Shown here: piece by piece, positions 2,954 through 37,003 of the stretch
Position numbering within the stretch: the first letter of the stretch is position 1
How the letters are laid out: each line of letters opens with the position of its first letter
IMG/VR virus record: IMGVR_UViG_3300050120_000152
Location: 1 to 64,000 of that record
Length of the DNA: 64,000 nt
Reading direction: 5' to 3' (one strand)
Notes under the pieces: model-generated
Seen by the model: the letters and a program-made list of their open reading frames with translations, nothing else
Database searches by the model: none
What the model was told of the DNA's origin: nothing
Position numbers and translations under genes: made by a program

Positions 2954-3287
2954 AACTCTTGTAGAATTGGTGGGTAAATGTAAATTCAAAGATTGGAATA
3001 TTACCATTGATAAAGATAAAATCAGTGGTAATCGTCCTTATCTACAGGTTAAATTTATTGATATTGATCACATTACTGGATTGGAAGAAATGCAGCATTG
3101 TAGAAAATGGTACCTATCATACAATATGGTAGAATCTGAAGTAGTTCGTACAGCACATAAAGCGGTGCGGACAGCAATGGAACATGAAGTAGATGAAGCG
3201 TTTACCTATGATGGTACTCGTATTTTTAATCCTCATATGGATTTATTATTGTTAGCAAAAGCTGCTAAACATATCGACATAAGGTAA
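2940..3287 (+). CDS. Hypothetical protein (start MLTYETL)
   Basis: Overlaps the previous stop; the longer 2793 start overlaps the upstream gene. Confidence 0.65.
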   Translation: MLTYETLVELVGKCKFKDWNITIDKDKISGNRPYLQVKFIDIDHITGLEEMQHCRKWYLSYNMVESEVVRTAHKAVRTAMEHEVDEAFTYDGTRIFNPHMDLLLLAKAAKHIDIR

Positions 3288-3291
3288 GATC

Positions 3292-3534
3292 ATGAAACCC
3301 ATTACATTATGGACTGTGAAAAGTAAGATAACGGTAAAAGAAAATGATAAAGATGTGACCAAGGTAGTATGGTTGTTTAATCATATCGAAGATGGACACT
3401 GTAATAACGATAAACCAACCATTAAATTTGATACCCAACGTGGTTGGAATAGCAATACATGGACAAAAGAGTTTGCACATTTAGATGATAATTATAAGGT
3501 AATACACAATCATGAAAACGTACACCAAGGCTGA
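3292..3534 (+). CDS. Hypothetical protein
   Basis: Tightly packed ORF. Confidence 0.6.
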   Translation: MKPITLWTVKSKITVKENDKDVTKVVWLFNHIEDGHCNNDKPTIKFDTQRGWNSNTWTKEFAHLDDNYKVIHNHENVHQG

Positions 3535-3745
3535 TATCAAAGATATCGTAAAAGATAGTAAAAAAGTAAATTTTGTAAGATACCGTAAAGGCGAACTTAT
3601 TTACGTAACAGAATGTGGATTAGAATTCCCTGTACCAATTGAAGATGCTGGTGATGGTATATTCTTAGCACAAGATAAAGCACTTATTTTCATGCGCTAT
3701 ATAAGAAAGCATATTGAGAGCATAGTTGAAGCAACTAACTCTTGA
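3512..3745 (+). CDS. Conserved phage hypothetical protein
   Basis: ORF followed directly by a promoter region. Confidence 0.65.
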   Translation: MKTYTKADIKDIVKDSKKVNFVRYRKGELIYVTECGLEFPVPIEDAGDGIFLAQDKALIFMRYIRKHIESIVEATNS

Positions 3746-3779
3746 CAAGATATAAAAATAGTTGTAATATCTATAAATA
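3742..3779 (+). promoter_or_regulatory. Tandem sigma70 (TTGACA-N17-TAATAT) and T4-type late (TATAAATA) promoters for tRNA-Ser
   Basis: TTGACA 3742-3747, TAATAT 3765-3770, TATAAATA 3772-3779. Confidence 0.7.
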
Positions 3780-3786
3780 GAAATAC

Positions 3787-3878
3787 GGAAAGGTGCCAGA
3801 GTTGGTCTATTGGCGCTGCCTGCTAAGCAGTTGGGCCTATAATGGGCCACGAGGGTTCGAATCCCTCTCTTTCCGCCA
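3787..3878 (+). tRNA. tRNA-Ser(GCT)
   Basis: Cloverleaf with long variable arm, loop CT-GCT-AA, GTTCGAATC, G73, encoded CCA. Confidence 0.95.
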
Positions 3879-28201: not shown

Positions 28202-29894
28202 ACAAATATTAGCAAATAATACCGAAGACTTTATACTTAAGTATAAAGCAGCATTAAAAGCTAAATTGTCGAAAGAACAATTTTCGAAATATATGGGCTT
28301 GGACATTCGTACTGTAGATCGCAAAAAACAAAAAATCAAGCAATTTGTTGGTATGGATTTACCCGCGCTACCATTAAAAGATGTAGAACTACCAAAGGCA
28401 GTATTAGCCAATTTTGAAAGCCTCATTGCCGTAACGGCTGAATCTGTATTAAAGAGCGAGAAAGTCAATAGTTCAGATGACAAAACTACAATAAACATAC
28501 AGAAAAATAAAAGATATATCATTACTGCCGCACAGAATGCGACACCAGTTCATGTCGGTTTCATGAAATCTCTTAATACCTTTGCTGAACATAATGATGC
28601 GCAATTGTTGGTTATACCATATCGTTATAAGAATCCTACTTCAGTATGGAACACTAATGATAAAGCACAAGATTGGTGGCATGAAGCAGTCAAACCTTAC
28701 TTATTAGATAACGAATTGAAGGTAGGCAAACATATAAAAATTATGGGAAATATTAAAATGCAGCCAACCGCTGTTAGCCCATTATCAGGTTTTGATACGG
28801 TATCCGATTTAGATTCGGCAATATTCGGTCATCCTAATGTAGAGTGGAAAACTATTCCATCTATACCGGGAAAAACACCAAAAGTGCTATTAACCACGGG
28901 AGCAGTCACCGTTCCAAACTACACTGATACTAAAGCAGGGCATAAGGGGGCATTCCACCATATAATATCTGCCATCGTATTAGAAATAGATGAAGATGAA
29001 ATTTTTCACGTTCGTCATGTAACCGCCGATGCCAAAGGATCATTTTATGATCTAGATAAATTATATACTAATTTTGGTAGTGTGGTAACGACTACTACGC
29101 ACGGTGCATTAGCACTTATTGCGGGCGACATACATGCGGAAGTAATAGATGAGCCTACCCGAGATGCATTATTTTTAAATTTGGACTCTGTAGCTTCAGT
29201 ATTAAAACCCAAAGCATTTGTATTACATGATCTTATAGATTCTACAGCAAGAAATCACCATATTAGCCGTGATGGTATCGGTCGTTTTATACGACATTAT
29301 TTTGATAAAAATGATAATGTTGAAGACGGTTTACAAATTGCTGCCGATTTCATTGATAGTATTTCAAGACCAGATGCAACAAATGTCATCATACGGTCAA
29401 ACCACGATGAACATCTTGATAGATGGTTATCAGAAGCTGATCCAAAGACTGATCCAGAAAATGCAAAGTTTTATCATTATTTAAAATATAATCAGTATGA
29501 TGCTATCCAGAATGGAGAAGATTTCTCAGTATTAGAATTTTGGTGTAACAATCCAGATGATAATGCAGGTTTGGTTAATTTGGATAATACAGTATTTTTG
29601 AAGCGCAACGAATCCTATGAAATATCGGGGGTAGAAATATCATTACATGGCGATCAAGGCCCGAATGGTTCAAGAGGAAGCCTTCGTAACCTTTCGAGAA
29701 TGGGTCAGAAGCTTGTAATAGGTCATAGTCATACGCCGGGTATCATAAATGGATCGTATCAGGTGGGTACCACTTCGAAGCTTCAATTGGACTATAATAA
29801 AGGCCCAAGTTCGTGGCTTAATACAGCAGCAATCATTTATCCAAATGGAACAGTCACATTGATAAATGTTATAGATGGAAAATGGAAGTTATAA
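28194..29894 (+). CDS. T5 A1-like protein (HTH + metallophosphoesterase-type nuclease)
   Basis: RYIITAAQNATPV, GDIH, HDL.D, SNHDEHL, HGDQGPNGSRGS, GHSHTPGI, YNKGPSSW. Confidence 0.7.
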   Translation: MNKQILANNTEDFILKYKAALKAKLSKEQFSKYMGLDIRTVDRKKQKIKQFVGMDLPALPLKDVELPKAVLANFESLIAVTAESVLKSEKVNSSDDKTTINIQKNKRYIITAAQNATPVHVGFMKSLNTFAEHNDAQLLVIPYRYKNPTSVWNTNDKAQDWWHEAVKPYLLDNELKVGKHIKIMGNIKMQPTAVSPLSGFDTVSDLDSAIFGHPNVEWKTIPSIPGKTPKVLLTTGAVTVPNYTDTKAGHKGAFHHIISAIVLEIDEDEIFHVRHVTADAKGSFYDLDKLYTNFGSVVTTTTHGALALIAGDIHAEVIDEPTRDALFLNLDSVASVLKPKAFVLHDLIDSTARNHHISRDGIGRFIRHYFDKNDNVEDGLQIAADFIDSISRPDATNVIIRSNHDEHLDRWLSEADPKTDPENAKFYHYLKYNQYDAIQNGEDFSVLEFWCNNPDDNAGLVNLDNTVFLKRNESYEISGVEISLHGDQGPNGSRGSLRNLSRMGQKLVIGHSHTPGIINGSYQVGTTSKLQLDYNKGPSSWLNTAAIIYPNGTVTLINVIDGKWKL

Positions 29895-29920
29895 AAAAAG
29901 CCCCTTTCGGGGCTTTTTTA
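29893..29920. terminator. Bidirectional intrinsic terminator between convergent genes
   Basis: AAAAAAGCCCC-TTTC-GGGGCTTTTTT. Confidence 0.9.
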
Positions 29921-30010
29921 TTTTGACCAATCGTTAAACACGAAGGCACATATGATTATGATTACCAGAATGAGTAATCCTATTCCAAGAATACCAAGCA
30001 CAAGTCCCAT
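29918..30010 (-). CDS. 30-aa single-pass membrane peptide MGLVLGILGIGLLILVIIIICAFVFNDWSK (absent from the ORF track)
   Basis: TAATG coupling to the upstream ORF; stop lies in the terminator tail. Confidence 0.6.
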   Translation of the reverse strand: MGLVLGILGIGLLILVIIIICAFVFNDWSK

Positions 30011-30288
30011 TACTTAGATAAATCTGATTTTAGAGATTCTTCGACAACCTCATCAGCATCAAACTTCTTAGCTTCGCATTTGCCACATTCCCATTTGCCG
30101 GAATCCAAAATTGCTTGGCTAGTAGTGGAAGGTTCATCGCATGCATCACAATGACCTTTTACTAACTTATTTGTACCTTCCAAAATACTTTTGCTTTTTA
30201 ATTCAAAATATTGTGCATAAAATGATCTGGCAGCTACCATATCTTCATTGATGCATGCCTGCACAGTTTGTTTAAGTAAATCTTTCAT
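30010..30288 (-). CDS. Late small protein with CxxC..CxxC (candidate prohead core protein)
   Basis: Minus-strand TATAAATA at 30317-30324; 'KSKSILEG' motif. Confidence 0.6.
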   Translation of the reverse strand: MKDLLKQTVQACINEDMVAARSFYAQYFELKSKSILEGTNKLVKGHCDACDEPSTTSQAILDSGKWECGKCEAKKFDADEVVEESLKSDLSK

Positions 30289-30409
30289 TGTTAAAAATCT
30301 CTGTTATGTTAATCATTATTTATACCGGATACTGATTGTATGTTCGTTTTTTGTCGTGACATGTTTAAAAATGCATTATAAATATTTTTGATCAATATCA
30401 GAGATAATA

Positions 30410-31165
30410 ATGTCACACAACATAAAGTATACTCCAGAACGTATTAAAGAAATATCAAAATGCATGGATGATCCAATATATTTTATCAATACTTATGTAT
30501 ACATCCCTCACCCTAAACATGGTAAAATAAAATTTAAGTTATATGATTTTCAATATGAGTATATAAAACATATTGAAAATCATAAATTTACTATTGGATG
30601 GTGGTCGCGACAAACTGGGAAAACTTTAACCACACTACCATATATTTTATGGAATGTCATTTTTAATAGCAATAAAAATGCTTTCATTATGGCAGCTAGT
30701 TTACCGCAATCCAAGGAAATGATATTCATTTTACAATTTATGTTAAATAATCTTCCTGATTGGTTGAAGCCGAATATTGACAAAAGTAATTGGAACAAAA
30801 CTTCATTAGCTTTTGAAAATGGCAGTTTTATTCATGCTTTGACAAATTTTATTCAAATTAGAGGCAGAACAGTAGACTTAATATATTTTGATGAGTTTGC
30901 TTATTATGTAAATAAAGGTAATTTTGAGGATGTGTTTCCGGCACTTGCAATAAATTCTAAAGTGATTATAGCATCAACTGGAAAAAAAGATTCGCAGTTT
31001 AATAAATTATATTTTTATGTTTTGGATAATCGTTCAAGCCCATTTTCACTATTTTCAGTATCTTGGAATCAAGTTCCCGGTAGAGATTCTACATTTAAGA
31101 CATCTATGATAAATTTAATAGGTGAACATCAATGGAATGATGAATACGAAGTTGGTATAAGATAA
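30410..31165 (+). CDS. Terminase large subunit ATPase-only paralog
   Basis: SRQTGKT Walker A, IYFDEFAY Walker B; colinear with the first ~260 aa of the next gene; TATAAATA 30377-30384. Confidence 0.85.
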   Translation: MSHNIKYTPERIKEISKCMDDPIYFINTYVYIPHPKHGKIKFKLYDFQYEYIKHIENHKFTIGWWSRQTGKTLTTLPYILWNVIFNSNKNAFIMAASLPQSKEMIFILQFMLNNLPDWLKPNIDKSNWNKTSLAFENGSFIHALTNFIQIRGRTVDLIYFDEFAYYVNKGNFEDVFPALAINSKVIIASTGKKDSQFNKLYFYVLDNRSSPFSLFSVSWNQVPGRDSTFKTSMINLIGEHQWNDEYEVGIR

Positions 31166-31166
31166 A

Positions 31167-32033
31167 ATGGCAAGAAATCCTAGAGTCAAAAAACCATTTA
31201 TTCAAATGGAATATACCAAAGAAATGGTTGATGAAATACGTAAATGTATAGTCGATCCAGTATATTTTATCAATACTTATGTATATATTCTTCATCCTAA
31301 GCATGGTAGAATACGATTTAAGTTATATGATTTTCAAGAAGACATTGTTCGCACTTACCAAGCGAATCGTTGGTCTATCTCAAAAATTGCGCGTCAGTCG
31401 GGTAAAACTGAAACGACTTGTGCCTATTTGGCATGGTATGCCCTGTTCCATCCAGAGAAGACTATTCTTGTTGCTGCCAACAAATTGAGTAATGCCAAGG
31501 AAATCATCAGCCGTATTCAAGGCATCTATGAAGAATTGCCAGATTGGATAAAGCCGGGGATTGATGAAAGTGAATGGAACAAAACATCATTAGCTTTTGA
31601 AAATAAATCGAAGATCATGGCGCAAGCAACTTCCCAGAATACGGGACGTGGTTTTGCGATTTCATTATTATATTTGGACGAACTTGCGTTCGTTCCTCCA
31701 CATATTCAACAATTAATGTGGGCATCTATTCAGCCAGTATTGGCCACAGGTGGATCATGTATTATTAGCTCAACCCCAAATGGTTCTATTGACTTATATT
31801 CTCAATTATTCAGAGAAGCAGAAGCAGGATTAAGCGCATTCGCAGCCATTGACGTTAAGTGGTGGCAAGTACCGGGTAGAGATGAAGCATTCAAATTAGA
31901 ACAAATTGGTTTGATTGGTCAACGAAGATGGGATCAAGAATTTGAGTGCTGCGTATATGATTCTGCTATAAATATAATGGTAAATGGTATAATTAAAAGT
32001 ATTACCATTGGGGAATTATATGATTTATTTTGA
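31167..32033 (+). CDS. terL: Terminase large subunit N-fragment (ATPase) + 28-aa split-intein IntN
   Basis: ARQSGKT, LYLDELAF, SSTPNG, WDQEFE|CCVYDSAIN..ITIGELYDLF*. Confidence 0.92.
   Translation: MARNPRVKKPFIQMEYTKEMVDEIRKCIVDPVYFINTYVYILHPKHGRIRFKLYDFQEDIVRTYQANRWSISKIARQSGKTETTCAYLAWYALFHPEKTILVAANKLSNAKEIISRIQGIYEELPDWIKPGIDESEWNKTSLAFENKSKIMAQATSQNTGRGFAISLLYLDELAFVPPHIQQLMWASIQPVLATGGSCIISSTPNGSIDLYSQLFREAEAGLSAFAAIDVKWWQVPGRDEAFKLEQIGLIGQRRWDQEFECCVYDSAINIMVNGIIKSITIGELYDLF
31947..32030 (+). mobile_element. Split intein N-part (IntN, 28 aa)
   Basis: Block A C-x-x-x-D-S-x-I; resembles the short IntN of the AceL-TerL atypical split intein. Confidence 0.85.
31967..31974 (+). promoter_or_regulatory. 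Late promoter inside IntN for the downstream endonuclease-IntC-TerL-C ORF
   Basis: TATAAATA; SD GGGGA 32010-32014; ATG 32020. Confidence 0.65.
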
Positions 32034-34122
32034 AAAAAATAATGTTAAATATGTAATATCCAAAATTGATAATAAAAAATATTGTAAGACAAATGGCACA
32101 TTTACTAGACATTTGAAAACTAATAATTTAACAGAATTAGAATATTTTATAAAATATATAGATAGCCCTCAATATTGTCAATGTGGGGATATATGCAGTT
32201 TTAATAAAAGTGATTGGACGTTTAAAGAAATTTGTGGAATTAAATGTGCAGGATGGCTTAATTCAAAAAAATATCAAATTTCTTCTCCCGAATATAAACA
32301 ACGGTGGAAACGCCGTGCAATAGAAACGTACACAGAATTGCCTAGTGAACAACGTTCTCAAATAATACAAAAAAATAAAATTAAAGCGCCTATGGCGCGA
32401 AAAAAACGTATTGATACGTTAATAAACAAATACGGCAAAGAATGGTATAATAATCAAAAAGCATCAACCACTAAAAAAGCATTTACTAAACAACGATGGA
32501 AGCAAATCATTGATGATCAAAATTTATCAAAATTGAAAATATATGGCACATCTAAAATGTCTGAACCTGCTAGAGATAGGATAGTTCATCATGCTAGACA
32601 CATATTAAATCATCCTGATGTTAAAAGTGGAATGTCTAGATATTCCAAAATGGCAACAAATTTTTTTGCATCACTTAATATACCAGAAGCTTTATTTGGT
32701 GATAATGAATTTGTCATTCAACATATTAATGGATATGCTAGATATGATTTCAAGTATAAAAATAAAATAATAGAATTCAATGGCAATTACTGGCATGCTA
32801 ATCCAAATAAGTATGCGCATGATACAATCATATCATACCCAAGAAATAAAAAAATAAAAGCTTCTAATATATGGCACAAAGATGCTAAAAAAATTGAAAT
32901 AGCAAAAATGGCGGGCTATGAAGTATTGGTAATATGGGAGGATCAATTAAAGGGCGATATTAACAAACTAATAAAAAATATTAGACAGTGGTTAGTTGAC
33001 AGCCATGAATATAAAGAAAATAAAAATGCTGTTAAAATATTAACCCCACAGGGTTATTCTAAATTTAGTGGTATAAACAAACTTATTAAATTAGGTAGCA
33101 TAAAAATATTCTGTGATAATGGAACAGATATTGAATGTAGTTATAGCCATAAAATAAAAACTCAAGATGGGTATAAAATTGCTACAGACATTATATTATT
33201 AGATAGTATAACGACAGTAGATGGTGAACGTAAAGTTATCAATATTGAATGTTATCCTAATAAATTAGTAGATTTATATGATTTAATTGATGTAGAACTT
33301 GGTAATGAATATTATACTAATGGTATTTTAAGTCATAATTGCAAATTCTTAACATCTGAACATACCTTAATAGACCTTGATATGTTGGATCATGCTGAAA
33401 AAATGTTAGCTGGGCCAGCTATATCAGTGAAATCATTATATGATCAAATATTTTGGAAAGTACCAAACAAAATGGCTACATATATTGTAGGTGTCGATCC
33501 ATCTCAAGGTGTTGGAAACGATTTTAGTGTAATTCAGGTTTATGATTTTCCTAGTATGGAACAGGTAGCCGAATATCGCACCAATCAAGAATCTCCTGCC
33601 ATGTTATACTCGTATCTTAAATCATTATTAAAATTTTTAGAAAAGAATGTCAAATATGTTTATTATTCTGTAGAAAATAATGCATTGGGTCAAGCTATTA
33701 TTGCCTTATATGAAGCTGATACTAATCCGTTGGAAAAAGCTATTTTCATGTCAGAAGAAGGTAAAGATACATTGGGGTATAATTCTAATATAAAGAGTAA
33801 AAACAAATCATTAATTGCTTTCAAGGAAATGTTTGAACGTGGTCAATTAAAAGTAAACTCGCCCATTTTAATTAAAGAATTAAAAACTTTGGTAAGAAAA
33901 GAGAATACATTCAAGGCTCAGATAGGTTCTACAGATGACTGCGTATTCGCTTCATTGATCGTTATACGAATGGTAGAAGATATGGCCGATTCTGATATGG
34001 TAGCATATAATAAATTATATTCATTTGAAAATGTTAAGGTAGATAATTGGAAAATAGAATCTAATGACGATTTTAATGAAAACTGGGATAATGATGGATA
34101 CATGCCTTTCAGCATTGGATAA
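32020..34122 (+). CDS. terL: Fusion: Vsr-like homing endonuclease (~32020-33000) + IntC (~33007-33339) + TerL C-fragment (RNase H-like nuclease, 33340-34122)
   Basis: YDFKYKNKIIEFNGNYWHANP..KD..K..GYEVLVIWE; KILTPQGYSKFSGI..SHK..LYDLIDVE..YYTNGILSHN|C; VGVDPSQGVGNDFS, VENN, DDCVFA. Confidence 0.88.
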   Translation: MIYFEKNNVKYVISKIDNKKYCKTNGTFTRHLKTNNLTELEYFIKYIDSPQYCQCGDICSFNKSDWTFKEICGIKCAGWLNSKKYQISSPEYKQRWKRRAIETYTELPSEQRSQIIQKNKIKAPMARKKRIDTLINKYGKEWYNNQKASTTKKAFTKQRWKQIIDDQNLSKLKIYGTSKMSEPARDRIVHHARHILNHPDVKSGMSRYSKMATNFFASLNIPEALFGDNEFVIQHINGYARYDFKYKNKIIEFNGNYWHANPNKYAHDTIISYPRNKKIKASNIWHKDAKKIEIAKMAGYEVLVIWEDQLKGDINKLIKNIRQWLVDSHEYKENKNAVKILTPQGYSKFSGINKLIKLGSIKIFCDNGTDIECSYSHKIKTQDGYKIATDIILLDSITTVDGERKVINIECYPNKLVDLYDLIDVELGNEYYTNGILSHNCKFLTSEHTLIDLDMLDHAEKMLAGPAISVKSLYDQIFWKVPNKMATYIVGVDPSQGVGNDFSVIQVYDFPSMEQVAEYRTNQESPAMLYSYLKSLLKFLEKNVKYVYYSVENNALGQAIIALYEADTNPLEKAIFMSEEGKDTLGYNSNIKSKNKSLIAFKEMFERGQLKVNSPILIKELKTLVRKENTFKAQIGSTDDCVFASLIVIRMVEDMADSDMVAYNKLYSFENVKVDNWKIESNDDFNENWDNDGYMPFSIG

Positions 34123-34675
34123 TGATAAATATATTATCGGAGCTTGCACCTTGAAAGAATATCAGTTATTATTAGAACTCAGCTATTTTGACCTTGAAGG
34201 TAGAACAAATTCTATCATGGGTCACGAAAGAACAGAAAATTCCAATAAAGTAAAATTGGATAATATGACCTTCATTCCAATGGCTAGTAGTGGTAATCTT
34301 AAAATAGGCTCTAATACTACCTCTAATAACGGGCATGATTATTGGAGTACATTATTATTTGATAATATCACCTATCTTTCCGATGAAGATCAAAAAGACC
34401 CGCAAGCATATACATTCACAGGTTCAGATAATACTGAATATCAAATCAAGCGTGTTCCGCGTAATGCTAATGTCAAAGTGAATTGCTCATGTTTAGACTT
34501 TCACTATAGATTTGCTGTATGGGATAATAAATTTAAAGCATTAGACGGTAATCCGCCAGCACCTTACATCAAACGTTCAAACCGCCCATCAGTAAACCCT
34601 ATGCAAACTCCCGGTTTATGTAAACATCTGATAAAATTAATGAATGACCTAAAAGCTCAAAATTTCTTCATTTAA
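34064..34675 (+). CDS. SWIM-type zinc-finger protein (true start uncertain, probably downstream)
   Basis: VNCSCLDF...PGLCKHL. Confidence 0.65.
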   Translation: MTILMKTGIMMDTCLSALDNDKYIIGACTLKEYQLLLELSYFDLEGRTNSIMGHERTENSNKVKLDNMTFIPMASSGNLKIGSNTTSNNGHDYWSTLLFDNITYLSDEDQKDPQAYTFTGSDNTEYQIKRVPRNANVKVNCSCLDFHYRFAVWDNKFKALDGNPPAPYIKRSNRPSVNPMQTPGLCKHLIKLMNDLKAQNFFI

Positions 34676-34677
34676 CA

Positions 34678-34706
34678 TTGACAAACCCTAAAATCCCGTT
34701 TATACT
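34678..34706 (+). promoter_or_regulatory. sigma70 promoter for the SSB gene
   Basis: TTGACA-N17-TATACT. Confidence 0.85.
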
Positions 34707-34831
34707 TCATTCAGATTGAGTAGTTCGATTTTACGACACGAACTCAAGAATCGAATAAATAGATATGTTAGAGAACTATTCTAACACCTAGAAGCGTAAC
34801 ATCAGAAGAATTATAATTAGGAGATTTCAAG

Positions 34832-35815
34832 ATGAAGCCAGCATTAGAAGCGTTAAAGCAGAAGTTTAAAGAACAAGATGAAAAGAAAACTGAACAAGGC
34901 GGCAAAAGTAAATCGTTCGGAGATATGTATCCATTCTGGAACATAGATTACGGCCAAGAAGCCGAAATACGCACGCTACCTTATGCAGGTATGCCGGATG
35001 ACGCAATGCATCCATTTATTGATAAGTTAGAACACGTTCTATCTATCAATGGCGAAGATAAGAAAATACCATGTTTGAAAATGTATGGCGAAGAATGTCC
35101 AATTTGTGCATTGTCTGCCAAATATTACAAAGCTGAAGGAAAAACTTCTACTAAGGGTAAATATTATTGGAGAGATAAGAAGAGTCTTGCCAGCGTTTAC
35201 GTGGCACAAGACCCATTACCGCCTAATGAAGAAACCAAAGAAAACGATCAAGGTAAAATGAAACTTGCTCAACTCGGTAATCAACTTTCTGGAAAATATG
35301 AAAGCAGATTCAAAACTTTATTGGCAAAAGATGATATAGACGATTTGCCGTGGTCATTGGACAATGGATTGAATTTCATTATCATAAAAGAGAAGAAGGG
35401 TGAGTATGACAAGTATGATACGTCAAGCGACTTTGCACGTAAGTCTAGCTCATTACCAAAGTCATTTTTGGAAACCTTTGAGCCCGTTGATTTGAGAAAA
35501 TATTTACCTGTTAATCCGGGCTTAGACAAGGTTCAACGTATGTTGGATGCACATGTTACTGGTAGTGAATACGTTGATGATTCTGAATCATCAACAAAGA
35601 CAGAACCGGAAACCAAAATTGATTCAGGTGTTTCAGAAAAGACAAAACATACTACGAGTGAAGTTAGAAAAGAAACTTCAAAGCCTGAAGATGATGTAGT
35701 TGTAGTTGAAGATGAAAAAACTGTTAATAAGGCAGTGAAATCAGAAGATTCGGATCAATCGACTGAAGAAAATGATTTCTTAGCTAAATTAAGACGCCGA
35801 GCAGGCAAAGAGTAA
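34832..35815 (+). CDS. gp32: Single-stranded DNA-binding protein (T4 gp32-like)
   Basis: CLKMYGEECPIC, G.NF.I.K..K..Y.KYD.S.F, acidic tail; upstream of uvsX. Confidence 0.8.
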   Translation: MKPALEALKQKFKEQDEKKTEQGGKSKSFGDMYPFWNIDYGQEAEIRTLPYAGMPDDAMHPFIDKLEHVLSINGEDKKIPCLKMYGEECPICALSAKYYKAEGKTSTKGKYYWRDKKSLASVYVAQDPLPPNEETKENDQGKMKLAQLGNQLSGKYESRFKTLLAKDDIDDLPWSLDNGLNFIIIKEKKGEYDKYDTSSDFARKSSSLPKSFLETFEPVDLRKYLPVNPGLDKVQRMLDAHVTGSEYVDDSESSTKTEPETKIDSGVSEKTKHTTSEVRKETSKPEDDVVVVEDEKTVNKAVKSEDSDQSTEENDFLAKLRRRAGKE

Positions 35816-35824
35816 GTAACTTAG

Positions 35825-35848
35825 AAAAGAGGGATCGCTCCCTCTTTT
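35825..35848 (+). terminator. Intrinsic terminator
   Basis: AAAAGAGGGA-TCGC-TCCCTCTTTT. Confidence 0.8.
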
Positions 35849-35878
35849 CGGTTTTCATTTAAATAAAGGATAATAATA

Positions 35879-37003
35879 ATGAGTTCGTTTGCAAAATTTA
35901 AAGAACGATTGGACAAAGCTAGTATAAAAGCGGGTATCCCAACCAAAAACGGGCCACCAGAATTTTTTATTGATACCGGCAATTATGTATTAAATAAAAT
36001 TATTTCTGGTAGCTATTTAAAGGGTTGGGCACAAGGTAGATTGGGTGCAATTGGTGGCCCATCAGGTTCAGGTAAATCATTTTTAATTGCAAATGCAATT
36101 AAAGCTGCACAAGAACAAGGTTGTGCAATTTTCTTATTAGACTCTGAAAACGCATTAGATACAGCATATTTGGAAGCAGTTGGTGTAGATACGGAAGCAG
36201 ATAATTTCATGTACCGAAGTGTGGTAACTATTGAGCAAGCTGTAGCCGAATTATCAAGATTCACTAAAGAATATCGTGCAGATGGAATGACTGATAGAGT
36301 GTTCATCGCATTAGATTCATTAGATATGTTAATGACCAATTCGCAGGTTGAAACCTATGCAAAGGGTGAAACTAAAGGTGATCAAGGCCAAGAAGTCAAG
36401 CAGTTGAAGAGTATGCTTAAGACTTGGGTGCAGGATATTAAAACATTACCATTCATCATAGTATGCGCAAAGCAAGTTTATCAAGAACAAGATCGTATTG
36501 CCAAATTGGTAGAACCATATGTGTTCACAGATGGTATTCGCTTCGCATTCTCACAAATTTTCATGATTACTAAATTAATGCTTAAGACCGAAGATGTAGA
36601 TGGTATTAAAAAGAAAGAAAAGCAAGCAGAAAAATATGCTGGTATCACAATGAAGGCCCGTGGGTTCAAAACGCGTCTTACAAAGCCATTTCAACAAGCA
36701 AAGATACAGGTACCGTGGGATTCGGGTATGGATCGTTTCTCTGGATTATTAGAAGTGGCGGAAGCGGTTGGAATAGTTGTTAAGAATGGATCATGGTACT
36801 ATCTCGGGGAAGAAAAATTTCAAAAAGGTACATTTGCAAATTATAGAGAAGAGGTTCTGAAATTATTAATAGAGCGTGAAGGTGATCTTGCTAAGGATGA
36901 CTTTATTGAAGTAGAAATCGAAGAAGAAGAGGCACCACCTGAAGGCTTGAGCATTGATGATCGCATTGCAGAAAAACTTAAGAAATTAGCAACAAAAGTA
37001 TAA
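35879..37003 (+). CDS. uvsX: RecA-like recombinase
   Basis: DTGNYVLNKIISG, GPSGSGKS, LDSENA, DSL, K.R.TKPF. Confidence 0.93.
   Translation: MSSFAKFKERLDKASIKAGIPTKNGPPEFFIDTGNYVLNKIISGSYLKGWAQGRLGAIGGPSGSGKSFLIANAIKAAQEQGCAIFLLDSENALDTAYLEAVGVDTEADNFMYRSVVTIEQAVAELSRFTKEYRADGMTDRVFIALDSLDMLMTNSQVETYAKGETKGDQGQEVKQLKSMLKTWVQDIKTLPFIIVCAKQVYQEQDRIAKLVEPYVFTDGIRFAFSQIFMITKLMLKTEDVDGIKKKEKQAEKYAGITMKARGFKTRLTKPFQQAKIQVPWDSGMDRFSGLLEVAEAVGIVVKNGSWYYLGEEKFQKGTFANYREEVLKLLIEREGDLAKDDFIEVEIEEEEAPPEGLSIDDRIAEKLKKLATKV

Follow-up and report, generated by a model that had tools for sequence, protein, structure and literature searches.

Among the closest described counterparts of the locus reported here are the fractured genes of Dassa et al. 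(2009; PMC2677866), in which a split intein divides a host gene and is itself interrupted by an endonuclease gene. In the published cases the endonuclease remains free-standing, and its 3' end overlaps the start of a separate gene for the C-terminal intein half (IntC) by 6-69 bp; one of these cases is the Lake Gatun terminase locus, with a 122-residue IntC. The late-promoter motif TATAAATA was found in 10 of the 16 endonuclease leaders, usually inside a hairpin that sequesters the ribosome-binding site (RBS), and loss of the endonuclease flanks was proposed as a route to in-frame endonuclease domains (Dassa et al., 2009). We analyzed a fractured gene for the large terminase (TerL) located at 31167..34122 in the first 64 kb (hereafter the window, 64,000 nucleotides) of the 340-kb viral contig IMGVR_UViG_3300050120_000152; all features of the window given by position below lie on the plus strand. 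In this gene the endonuclease runs in frame into IntC; the boundary between the two has probably been lost, and the two gene products would need to be joined by trans-splicing.

The locus shares with the published fractured genes the adjacent, co-oriented host halves, the phage context, and a split intein interrupted by a Vsr-like endonuclease gene that brings with it the stop codon upstream, a start of its own, and the late-promoter motif TATAAATA. It differs in that there is no stop between the endonuclease and IntC, IntC has no initiator, and no hairpin is detectable. The arrangement corresponds to half of the hypothetical step IIIa of Dassa et al. (2009). An initial reading of the locus from its sequence alone (hereafter the sequence-only reading) had rightly taken the free-standing endonuclease to be the published norm.

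Two other kinds of system bear on the comparison. In canonical bifunctional inteins, nested endonucleases are said to occupy one conserved site, between blocks B and F (PMC6801210). The product excised from the window TerL, once bound by the N-terminal intein half (IntN), would likewise have the parts of a Hint domain carrying a nuclease, but this nuclease lies between blocks A and B, is Vsr-like rather than LAGLIDADG or HNH, and is not part of an uninterrupted open reading frame (ORF), the frame being broken by a TGA (32031-33) and a +1 change that recur as a break in a related contig, L009. Gosselin, Arsenault & Gogarten (bioRxiv 10.1101/2025.01.02.630785) reported Vsr-like endonucleases with inteins only in split or antisense arrangements. 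Their actinophage inteins are similar to ours in that an intein and a once free-standing endonuclease share a locus, with frames 1-2 indels apart; they differ in being contiguous and in carrying the endonuclease ORFs at the usual site, with the Vsr-like ones antisense and none fused to a split IntC. We found no literature description of endonuclease-IntC fusions or of the tandem truncated TerL paralogs discussed below, which is weak evidence given that the searchable literature is incomplete.

A terminase gene in two overlapping reading frames

The terminase is encoded by two ORFs. ORF1 (31167..32033) encodes the TerL ATPase domain followed by a 28-aa IntN and ends ..RRWDQEFE|CCVYDSAINIMVNGIIKSITIGELYDLF-TGA. 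ORF2 (32020..34122) lies in the +1 frame relative to ORF1, begins at ATG 32020, and encodes in succession the endonuclease, IntC, and the TerL nuclease domain. The N-extein (31167..31946) comprises 260 aa ending ..RRWDQEFE and matches Pfam Terminase_6N at 4.6e-13, while the C-extein (33340..34122 including the stop), also 260 aa, begins CKFLTSEHTLID and matches Terminase_6C at 5e-10. The window TerL is T4-type. Its N-domain is 53% identical, and its C-domain 40-46% identical, to the TerL proteins of its nearest matches, the Xanthomonas/Stenotrophomonas jumbo phages XacN1, Xoo-sp13, and CM1. The coordinates, ORFs, Shine-Dalgarno (SD) sequence, promoter motif, EFNGNYWH motif, and IntC end given by the sequence-only reading are all present in the sequence.

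Comparison with the closest relative, contig L008 (IMGVR_UViG_3300023048_000002), identified both terminase halves as native exteins. L008 encodes a contiguous 524-aa TerL without an intein, whose junction reads ..RRWRQEYE|CEMLTSEHTLID.., which places the intein site of the window exactly at E260|C261. The window N-extein is 69-70% identical to L008 residues 3-260, and the C-extein is 63% identical to residues 261-524 in an alignment that begins exactly at C261. Because the contiguous TerL of L008 matches both exteins and their exact boundary, the predicted spliced product of 520 aa, reading ..RRWDQEFE-CKFLTSEHTLID.. (..QEFE-CKFLTSEH..; junction peptide ..QEFECKFLTSEH..), resembles the orthologous TerL. 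The splice junction QEFE-CKFLTS that had been proposed from the sequence alone thus agrees with the intein-less ortholog. Most of 80 related IMG/VR terL loci are without an intein, like L008, and a megablast search of window positions 29000-36000 against the phage collection returned zero matches.

The two intein halves together account for a complete mini-intein. IntN (31947..32033) consists of 28 codons (CCVYDS..ITIGELYDLF) and the TGA, and is colinear with residues 1-30 of P0006, P0004, and P0002, contiguous mini-inteins at the same TerL site that were found by a protein collection search. The linker and IntC (33010..33339, ~110 aa, ORF2 residues ~331-440) carry the motifs CSYSH (block B), DLYDLIDVE (block F), and ILSHN (block G), lack a start codon of their own, and end YYTNGILSHN|C. 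Aligned to the mini-inteins, IntC begins ~3 residues past the end of IntN and reaches the terminal HN, so that the whole mini-intein is covered and the endonuclease falls between blocks A and B, near intein residue 30. In these alignments the catalytic set is complete (Cys1, the S-x-x-H of CSYSH, the block F Asp, the terminal HN, and Cys+1). IntC matched the 'Consensus engineered intein CatC' (PDB 6DSL_B) at E = 1.7e-12, with query residues 328-441 on chain residues 7-113, and its Pfam Intein_splicing score (0.67) was below threshold. For IntN alone the best PDB match was to residues 2-28 of the Pab PolC/PolII inteins, which at E ~1 is not significant for so short a query. Base composition also set the intein apart: IntN and IntC were the only clear outliers, with a third-position GC content (GC3) of 0.09 for IntC (z = -3.7 versus the genome's ORFs).

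The split point lies near the intein N-terminus, with block A alone in the 28-aa IntN and blocks B, F, and G in an IntC of ~105-110 aa. From the sequence, these features support an atypical (short-IntN) class-1 split intein that fractures TerL at the ATPase/nuclease boundary, as the sequence-only reading had held. The AceL-TerL and GOS-TerL inteins and the engineered 'Cat' intein (PDB 6DSL) have the same short IntN with block A and long IntC with blocks B, F, and G, the same Cys1/Cys+1 class-1 residues, and, for the AceL-TerL/Cat type, a T4-type TerL host. Cat is attributed to the AceL-TerL-like inteins (Thiel 2014; Stevens 2018). The window differs from this type in that its IntC is preceded, within the same polypeptide, by an endonuclease of ~330 aa, and the splicing of the window intein is a prediction.

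The N-terminal part of ORF2 consists of two regions. The first (aa 1-205, 32020..32634) is presumed to bind DNA; helices and a Cys-rich motif are present, the sequence is homologous to the N-terminal part of the L009 endonuclease, and NUMOD and helix-turn-helix (HTH) modules were looked for in it with no Pfam match. The second is a Vsr-like/EDxHD catalytic domain (aa 206-330, 32635..33009) with the motif EFNGNYWH at aa 252-259 (nt 32773-96). Its catalytic residues D243, E252, N254, H259, and D288 are invariant or at least 90% conserved in 20 homologs. An AlphaFold2 (AF2) model built from 25 sequences was confident only at residues ~210-330 (pLDDT ~90), with low pLDDT across the N-terminal region. 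Foldseek matched the modeled catalytic domain to Vsr (1cw0_A, probability 0.99, TM 0.56) and I-Bth0305I (3r3p_B, probability 0.99, TM 0.62), with E-values (0.04-0.06) that are weak because the 440-aa query was mostly of low confidence.

A phmmer alignment to 3R3P (E 0.27) placed D243/E252/N254/H259/D288 on D196/E206/N208/H213/D222 of I-Bth0305I, and Taylor et al. (2011; PMC3239194) name D196, N208, H213, and D222 of this enzyme, E206 not being among them. The endonuclease also matched phrog_3339 ('homing endonuclease') at 7e-7; Pfam DUF559 (0.0055) was below threshold, and a profile of the 20 homologs found nothing in PDB at E<=1. By its modeled fold and these matches, the N-terminal part of ORF2 belongs to the Vsr-like/EDxHD family of homing endonucleases, and its active site seems intact. 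It has in common with I-Bth0305I a C-terminal Vsr-like fold, the D/E/N/H/D set, and a presumed DNA-binding N-terminal region. The similarity is marginal (the phmmer E-value given above), however, and the window protein has an insertion of ~20 aa between H259 and D288 and no recognizable NUMOD or HTH match in its N-terminal region, while I-Bth0305I is encoded in an intron and is not fused to an intein.

Recurrence of the endonuclease-IntC fusion

The sequence-only reading had correctly described an IntC fused in frame behind a Vsr-like endonuclease but implied that the arrangement was unique, and this is not so, as it is found in GenBank and in two further metagenomic lineages. Vibrio phage Va1 (MK387337), an isolated, plaque-forming phage, has a TerL-N-IntN ORF (..RQNFE|CVSGSTIINIF..LLNS*) overlapped by a 761-aa ORF that encodes an endonuclease, a short linker, IntC (..YYGNGVLNHN|C), and TerL-C, with no Met before IntC. 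GenBank names these coding sequences only 'putative DNA packaging protein' and 'putative terminase'. The Va1 endonuclease-IntC part is only 32% identical to that of the window and belongs to a different TerL lineage. A metagenomic relative of Va1, P0037 (contigs L005 and L006), has the same fusion with a TTG start after an AAGGA SD. In P0055 (contig L091), an endonuclease-IntC fusion with its own start is found at another TerL intein site, just before Walker B. Both Va1 and P0055 thus show the order seen in the window, a TerL-N-IntN ORF followed by an endonuclease-IntC-TerL fusion ORF, and P0055 differs in its pre-Walker-B site and in the ATGA coupling of its ORFs.

The fused state is nevertheless rare. 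A search of 1.84e9 representative proteins for the catalytic domain with IntC gave 4289 matches, and among the best 150 of these 4289 only the window protein and P0055 spanned both domains in one stretch. Across 79 IMG/VR loci with a related IntC, an in-frame endonuclease was found in the window only (1/79). IntC was preceded by at most 45 in-frame codons, counted to its own start or to the contig end, in 57 of the 79 loci, and by longer upstream frames, mostly those of contiguous inteins, in 21.

The most informative relative for the junction is L009 (IMGVR_UViG_3300010413_000004), which comes from a different metagenome and whose TerL-N is 52% identical to that of the window. Its IntN (CCSINTIV..ITIGDLYELLQQSDG*) is homologous and is overlapped by an endonuclease ORF in the +1 frame. 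The endonuclease ATG lies within 'TTA TAT GAA', homologous to 'TTA TAT GAT' of the window, and its SD (AGGTGA) lies in the homologous 'I-G-D' codons. Counted from that ATG the ORFs share 29 nt, or 38 nt when counted from GTG 5845, the first possible start, and the frames could not be joined by any single indel. As L009 shares the junction, the SD and ATG, and the endonuclease N-terminus with the window, the break between IntN and endonuclease predates the divergence of the two and is not an assembly artefact. The two loci also share an embedded promoter motif. They differ at the other end of the endonuclease, which in L009 is a free-standing, Hef-like protein of 503 aa whose 3' end overlaps the start of a separate IntC gene with its own ATG. 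The window endonuclease is without an extra C-terminal domain of ~200 aa seen in L009, which is compatible with a deletion that would have removed this domain and the IntC start together. Considering these sequences jointly, this intein family evidently has a hot spot for insertion after residue ~30, where the inserted gene has labile boundaries.

Further states of fractured genes were observed in the course of these comparisons. At the same TerL site, Vibrio phage 1.244.A (MG592609; L003 628-3778) has a GIY-YIG-type endonuclease fused in frame to IntN in a 653-aa 'coil containing protein', with IntC-TerL-C as a separate overlapping gene, a mirror image of the window. UvsX is fractured in Pseudomonas phage PA5oct (NC_071039; L002 1527-4533), where an 81-aa UvsX-N with an IntN of ~17 aa is followed by a free-standing, 477-aa Vsr-like endonuclease. 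The PA5oct IntC-UvsX-C lies in the same frame as the endonuclease, from which it is separated by a single in-frame stop and one codon, and has a Met; the record labels the pieces hypothetical proteins and 'UvsX-like recombinase'. In L141 (2-1720), a contiguous pre-Walker-B TerL intein carries a low-complexity in-frame insert of ~250 aa (S/R/K/N/Q-rich) after about residue 30, possibly an endonuclease gene translated in the wrong frame or from the wrong strand. TerL of L006 is in three genes (137-1787), because its Walker B site holds another atypical split intein (..VIDE|CVSEKETV..). The IntN and IntC genes of this second intein are separated by no more than a 34-aa ORF, and the endonuclease looks to have been lost from it already. 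Lastly, L011 has a free-standing, 187-aa Vsr-like endonuclease (3253-3816; ..YEFYGDNWHGN..MWENDY) just upstream of a TerS-like gene, a truncated TerL paralog, and terL, which indicates that homing endonucleases cluster around the terL neighborhood.

Expression signals, predicted splicing, and alternatives

The signals for separate expression of ORF2 are written within the IntN codons, as the sequence-only reading had proposed. An SD (GGGGA, 32010-14) precedes the ORF2 ATG (32020-22) with a spacing of 5 nt, both lying in the codons for I-G-E-L-Y-D (32010..32022). The T4-type late-promoter motif TATAAATA occupies IntN codons 7-10 (A-I-N-I; 31967..31974), 45 nt upstream of this ATG. A further copy (30377..30384) lies 25 nt upstream of TerL-N', a truncated TerL paralog that directly precedes terL, and likely promotes the genes for TerL-N' and TerL-N-IntN. 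Of 17 plus-strand copies of the motif in the window, 7, among them the copies inside IntN and before TerL-N', precede a large plus-strand ORF by 15-80 nt, compared with 5.5% expected from position (P = 1.7e-5) and 12% for control 8-mers of the same composition, a placement that fits T4-type late promoters. No plus-strand intrinsic terminators and no sigma-70 enrichment were found at the locus.

The embedded motif is a regular feature of loci of this type. It is inside IntN and 39-60 nt before the endonuclease start in 4/4 of them (the window, Va1, L006, and L009), having recurred in all three homologous loci checked against the window. It falls at IntN codons 7-10 (x-I-N-I) in the window, Va1 (L001 2695-2702), and L006 (1706-1713); in L009 (5786-5793) it is displaced upstream by four codons. 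Mini-inteins without an endonuclease read LVTV, IITV, or LITI at this position and are unable to encode TATAAATA. The position is also non-encoding in L091, with its ATGA coupling, and in 1.244.A, with its IntN-fused endonuclease, neither of which has need of a promoter there.

From these observations we propose the following course of events. The terL gene of a ~340-kb T4-like jumbo phage would have carried a class-1 mini-intein at the ATPase/nuclease boundary, into which a Vsr-like (EDxHD) homing-endonuclease gene inserted some 28 residues in. On its 5' side the endonuclease gene still breaks the frame, providing the stop for TerL-N-IntN, its own +1-frame SD and ATG, and the putative late promoter in the IntN codons. 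The 3' flank, with the endonuclease stop and the IntC start, would have been lost, so that the endonuclease continues in frame into IntC and the nuclease domain of TerL. Transcription late in infection, from 30377 and 31967, would then yield two proteins, TerL(1-260)-IntN28 and endonuclease(~330)-IntC(~110)-TerL(261-520). The 28-aa IntN would dock on IntC as in inteins of the AceL-TerL/Cat type, and trans-splicing would produce the 520-aa TerL and release IntN and an endonuclease-IntC by-product of ~51 kDa. Either this by-product or its precursor might cut the endonuclease-less terL alleles of co-infecting relatives and so bring about homing. The central part of this proposal, a fractured terL whose two products need trans-splicing and which has lost its endonuclease/IntC boundary, is in our judgment probably correct.

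Several observations weigh against the proposal. The 23 copies of TATAAATA found in the window are not far from the 17.4 +/- 4.1 expected, and a single copy is not rare in AT-rich DNA. Hairpins sequestering the RBS, of the Aeh1 mobE or Dassa type, were not significant in the window, Va1, or L006 (z -0.9, -1.1, and +0.8). The rarity of the fused state (1/79 loci; 2 of the best 150 matches) could mean that it is short-lived and mildly deleterious. In the AF2 model of the fusion, confidence for IntC was low, which may reflect a shallow alignment or disorder of IntC without IntN. Finally, a pattern scan for TerL-N found a single locus from this contig, of whose 340-kb genome 64 kb were read, and a second terL elsewhere is conceivable.

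Among alternative explanations, it is unlikely that IntC-TerL-C is freed from the endonuclease before splicing, whether because ribosomes initiate internally (at M297 or a non-canonical codon) or because the linker is cut by a protease, so that the locus functions as an ordinary fractured gene with a free endonuclease. Most relatives do express IntC-TerL-C from its own start, in keeping with the short upstream frames at 57/79 loci, and ORF2 contains an in-frame ATG (aa 297) and TTG (aa 303). These codons, however, are only the nearest to the linker and IntC, which themselves contain no in-frame ATG, GTG, or TTG; both lie inside the folded nuclease core and neither has an SD. Moreover, three independent fusion lineages are all without a start at the linker.

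The sequence-only reading had also raised a programmed +1 frameshift at TTT-TGA (32028..32033), which would join ORF1 and ORF2 into a 988-aa cis-splicing precursor with an oddly placed nested endonuclease and the trans-frame peptide ..ELYDLFEKNNVK... The two frames are compatible, and the resulting intein would have all its parts. On TTT-TGA-A, tRNA-Phe would re-pair perfectly on TTT after the slip with a stop codon in the A site, a likeness to the RF2 site. In the RF2 +1 site, CUU-UGA, an SD-like stimulator is located ~3 nt upstream of the shift codon; in the window, GGGGA ends 13 nt before TTT. The slippery codon is absent from the homologous junction of L009 (GGG-TAA) and, at the same TerL site, from Va1 (TCA-TAA) and L006 (CAA-TAA); all three are in two ORFs, and none has a slippery last sense codon before its stop. 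It is likewise not conserved in L091, where, at another TerL site, the second ORF uses the other (-1) frame and is coupled through ATGA, with an AAGGAG SD. The overlap instead contains a good SD and ATG for independent initiation, kept in L009, and TTT is common as a last codon in AT-rich DNA. We therefore consider a programmed frameshift quite improbable and judge TTT-TGA to be incidental, seemingly a lineage-specific coincidence, with low-level +1 read-through possible.

It is similarly improbable that the locus is decaying, with splicing impaired or the endonuclease dead and packaging carried out by non-covalent fragments, by another terminase gene, or not at all in a defective genome. The rarity of the fused state and the adjoining second ATPase-domain gene, TerL-N', would fit such decay, and split genes that work without splicing exist, e.g. 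Aeh1 NrdA (PMC3045599). Yet every catalytic residue of intein and nuclease is intact, the exteins are well conserved (63-70% to L008), and ORF2 keeps a 700-codon frame open in DNA of 29% GC. The same architecture persists in plaque-forming Va1, and TerL-N', without a nuclease domain or an intein part, is no substitute for TerL. A homopolymer sequencing or assembly error at 32028-33, concealing a contiguous intein with an in-frame endonuclease, is very improbable despite the T4 run followed by A7 at the junction, the single metagenome assembly, and a protein cluster of one member on one contig, given that the independent L009 assembly has the same two-ORF junction with a 29-nt overlap that no single indel removes, that isolated phage Va1 and contig L006 are also in two ORFs, and that an embedded SD, ATG, and promoter would be purposeless in a contiguous gene.

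The sequence-only reading therefore stands in its observations and in its account of a terminase fractured by a split intein with an endonuclease-IntC fusion, and fails in the frameshift alternative and the implied uniqueness; it had also missed the paralog upstream, which we address next.

Truncated terminase paralogs and significance of the locus

Directly upstream of ORF1, ending 1 nt before the terL ATG, is the gene for TerL-N' (30410..31165), a 251-aa TerL paralog with the ATPase domain only (Pfam Terminase_6N, 3e-10). TerL-N' is 42% identical to TerL-N and ends ..QWNDEYE-VGIR*, four codons past the intein site. Its Walker A (RQTGKT) and Walker B (FDEF) motifs are intact and STPNG has diverged to STGKK. 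Its best match among 5.8e9 proteins was its own neighbor TerL-N; it formed a long branch in the tree and was not sister to TerL-N. TerL-N' is absent from L008 and L009, and alignment of the region upstream of it to the L008 intergenic region was uninformative. Since it has neither intein parts nor a nuclease domain, TerL-N' leaves the reading of terL as a fractured gene unchanged. We also considered TerL-N' and TerL-C as the native pair and dropped this pairing: the composition of TerL-N' and of the endonuclease is within ~1.3-1.4 SD of the genome's ORFs, and L008 shows TerL-N and TerL-C to be native.

At least four other phage contigs have a truncated TerL paralog immediately before a full terL, namely L010 (4192-4980), L011 (4290-4970), L087 (1007-1804; P0047), and L089 (1294-2088; P0046). 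The L010 and L011 copies no longer have the Lys of Walker A and the Glu of Walker B, while the motifs are intact in L087 and L089. Except for the shorter copy of L011, the paralogs end 4-11 codons after the ATPase/nuclease boundary, and the three compared with their own neighbors (L010, L087, and L089) were 43-47% identical to them. The tree indicated at least two origins, with the L087 copy sister to its own TerL-N (support 100/98). One possibility is that aberrant recombination at the homing site left these genes behind as scars; another is that they have been kept as pseudo-ATPases. On the other side of the locus, an ORF at 34064-34675 overlaps the end of terL. It contains a zinc-finger-like motif of the SWIM type (CSCLDFHYRF..CKH), has a conserved, syntenic counterpart in L008 (6597-7109), and gave only a weak PHROG match.

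Two further readings, one of the fusion and a separate one of the paralogs, are speculative and, in our estimate, doubtful. The fusion may be under selection and not a passing accident, the endonuclease being an obligatory 1:1 by-product of terminase maturation that might stay latent while tethered to unspliced IntC-TerL-C and be set free only once IntN docks and splicing takes place. If so, homing would be gated by splicing and timed to late infection, with the promoter and start of the endonuclease encoded by the codons of the intein itself. The truncated ATPase-only paralogs, which end at this site in at least five phage contigs, could for their part be scars of aberrant homing at the terL domain boundary that may have been kept as pseudo-ATPase regulators of the packaging motor.

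Apart from these readings, the endonuclease-IntC fusion is a rare but recurring variant of a known fractured-gene arrangement that was already present, unremarked, in public sequences. It represents a natural intermediate between a free-standing, intein-fracturing endonuclease and an in-frame endonuclease domain, which Dassa et al. (2009) proposed but did not observe. The fusion is at a non-canonical position of the Hint fold, and a Vsr-like nuclease had not previously been reported as an in-frame intein domain. For protein engineering, the locus adds new members to the short-IntN split inteins and suggests that these may tolerate large, folded N-terminal cargo on IntC.

One TerL site offers all states, namely intein-less, mini-intein, split with a free endonuclease, endonuclease-IntC, and GIY-YIG-IntN, and with comparators for every state at a single site the order of events becomes testable. 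For phage biology, the locus is an example of late promoter, SD, and ATG motifs encoded inside the codons of an intein. The recurrent truncated TerL-N' genes, in turn, mark the boundary between the TerL ATPase and nuclease domains as a likely hot spot of recombination.

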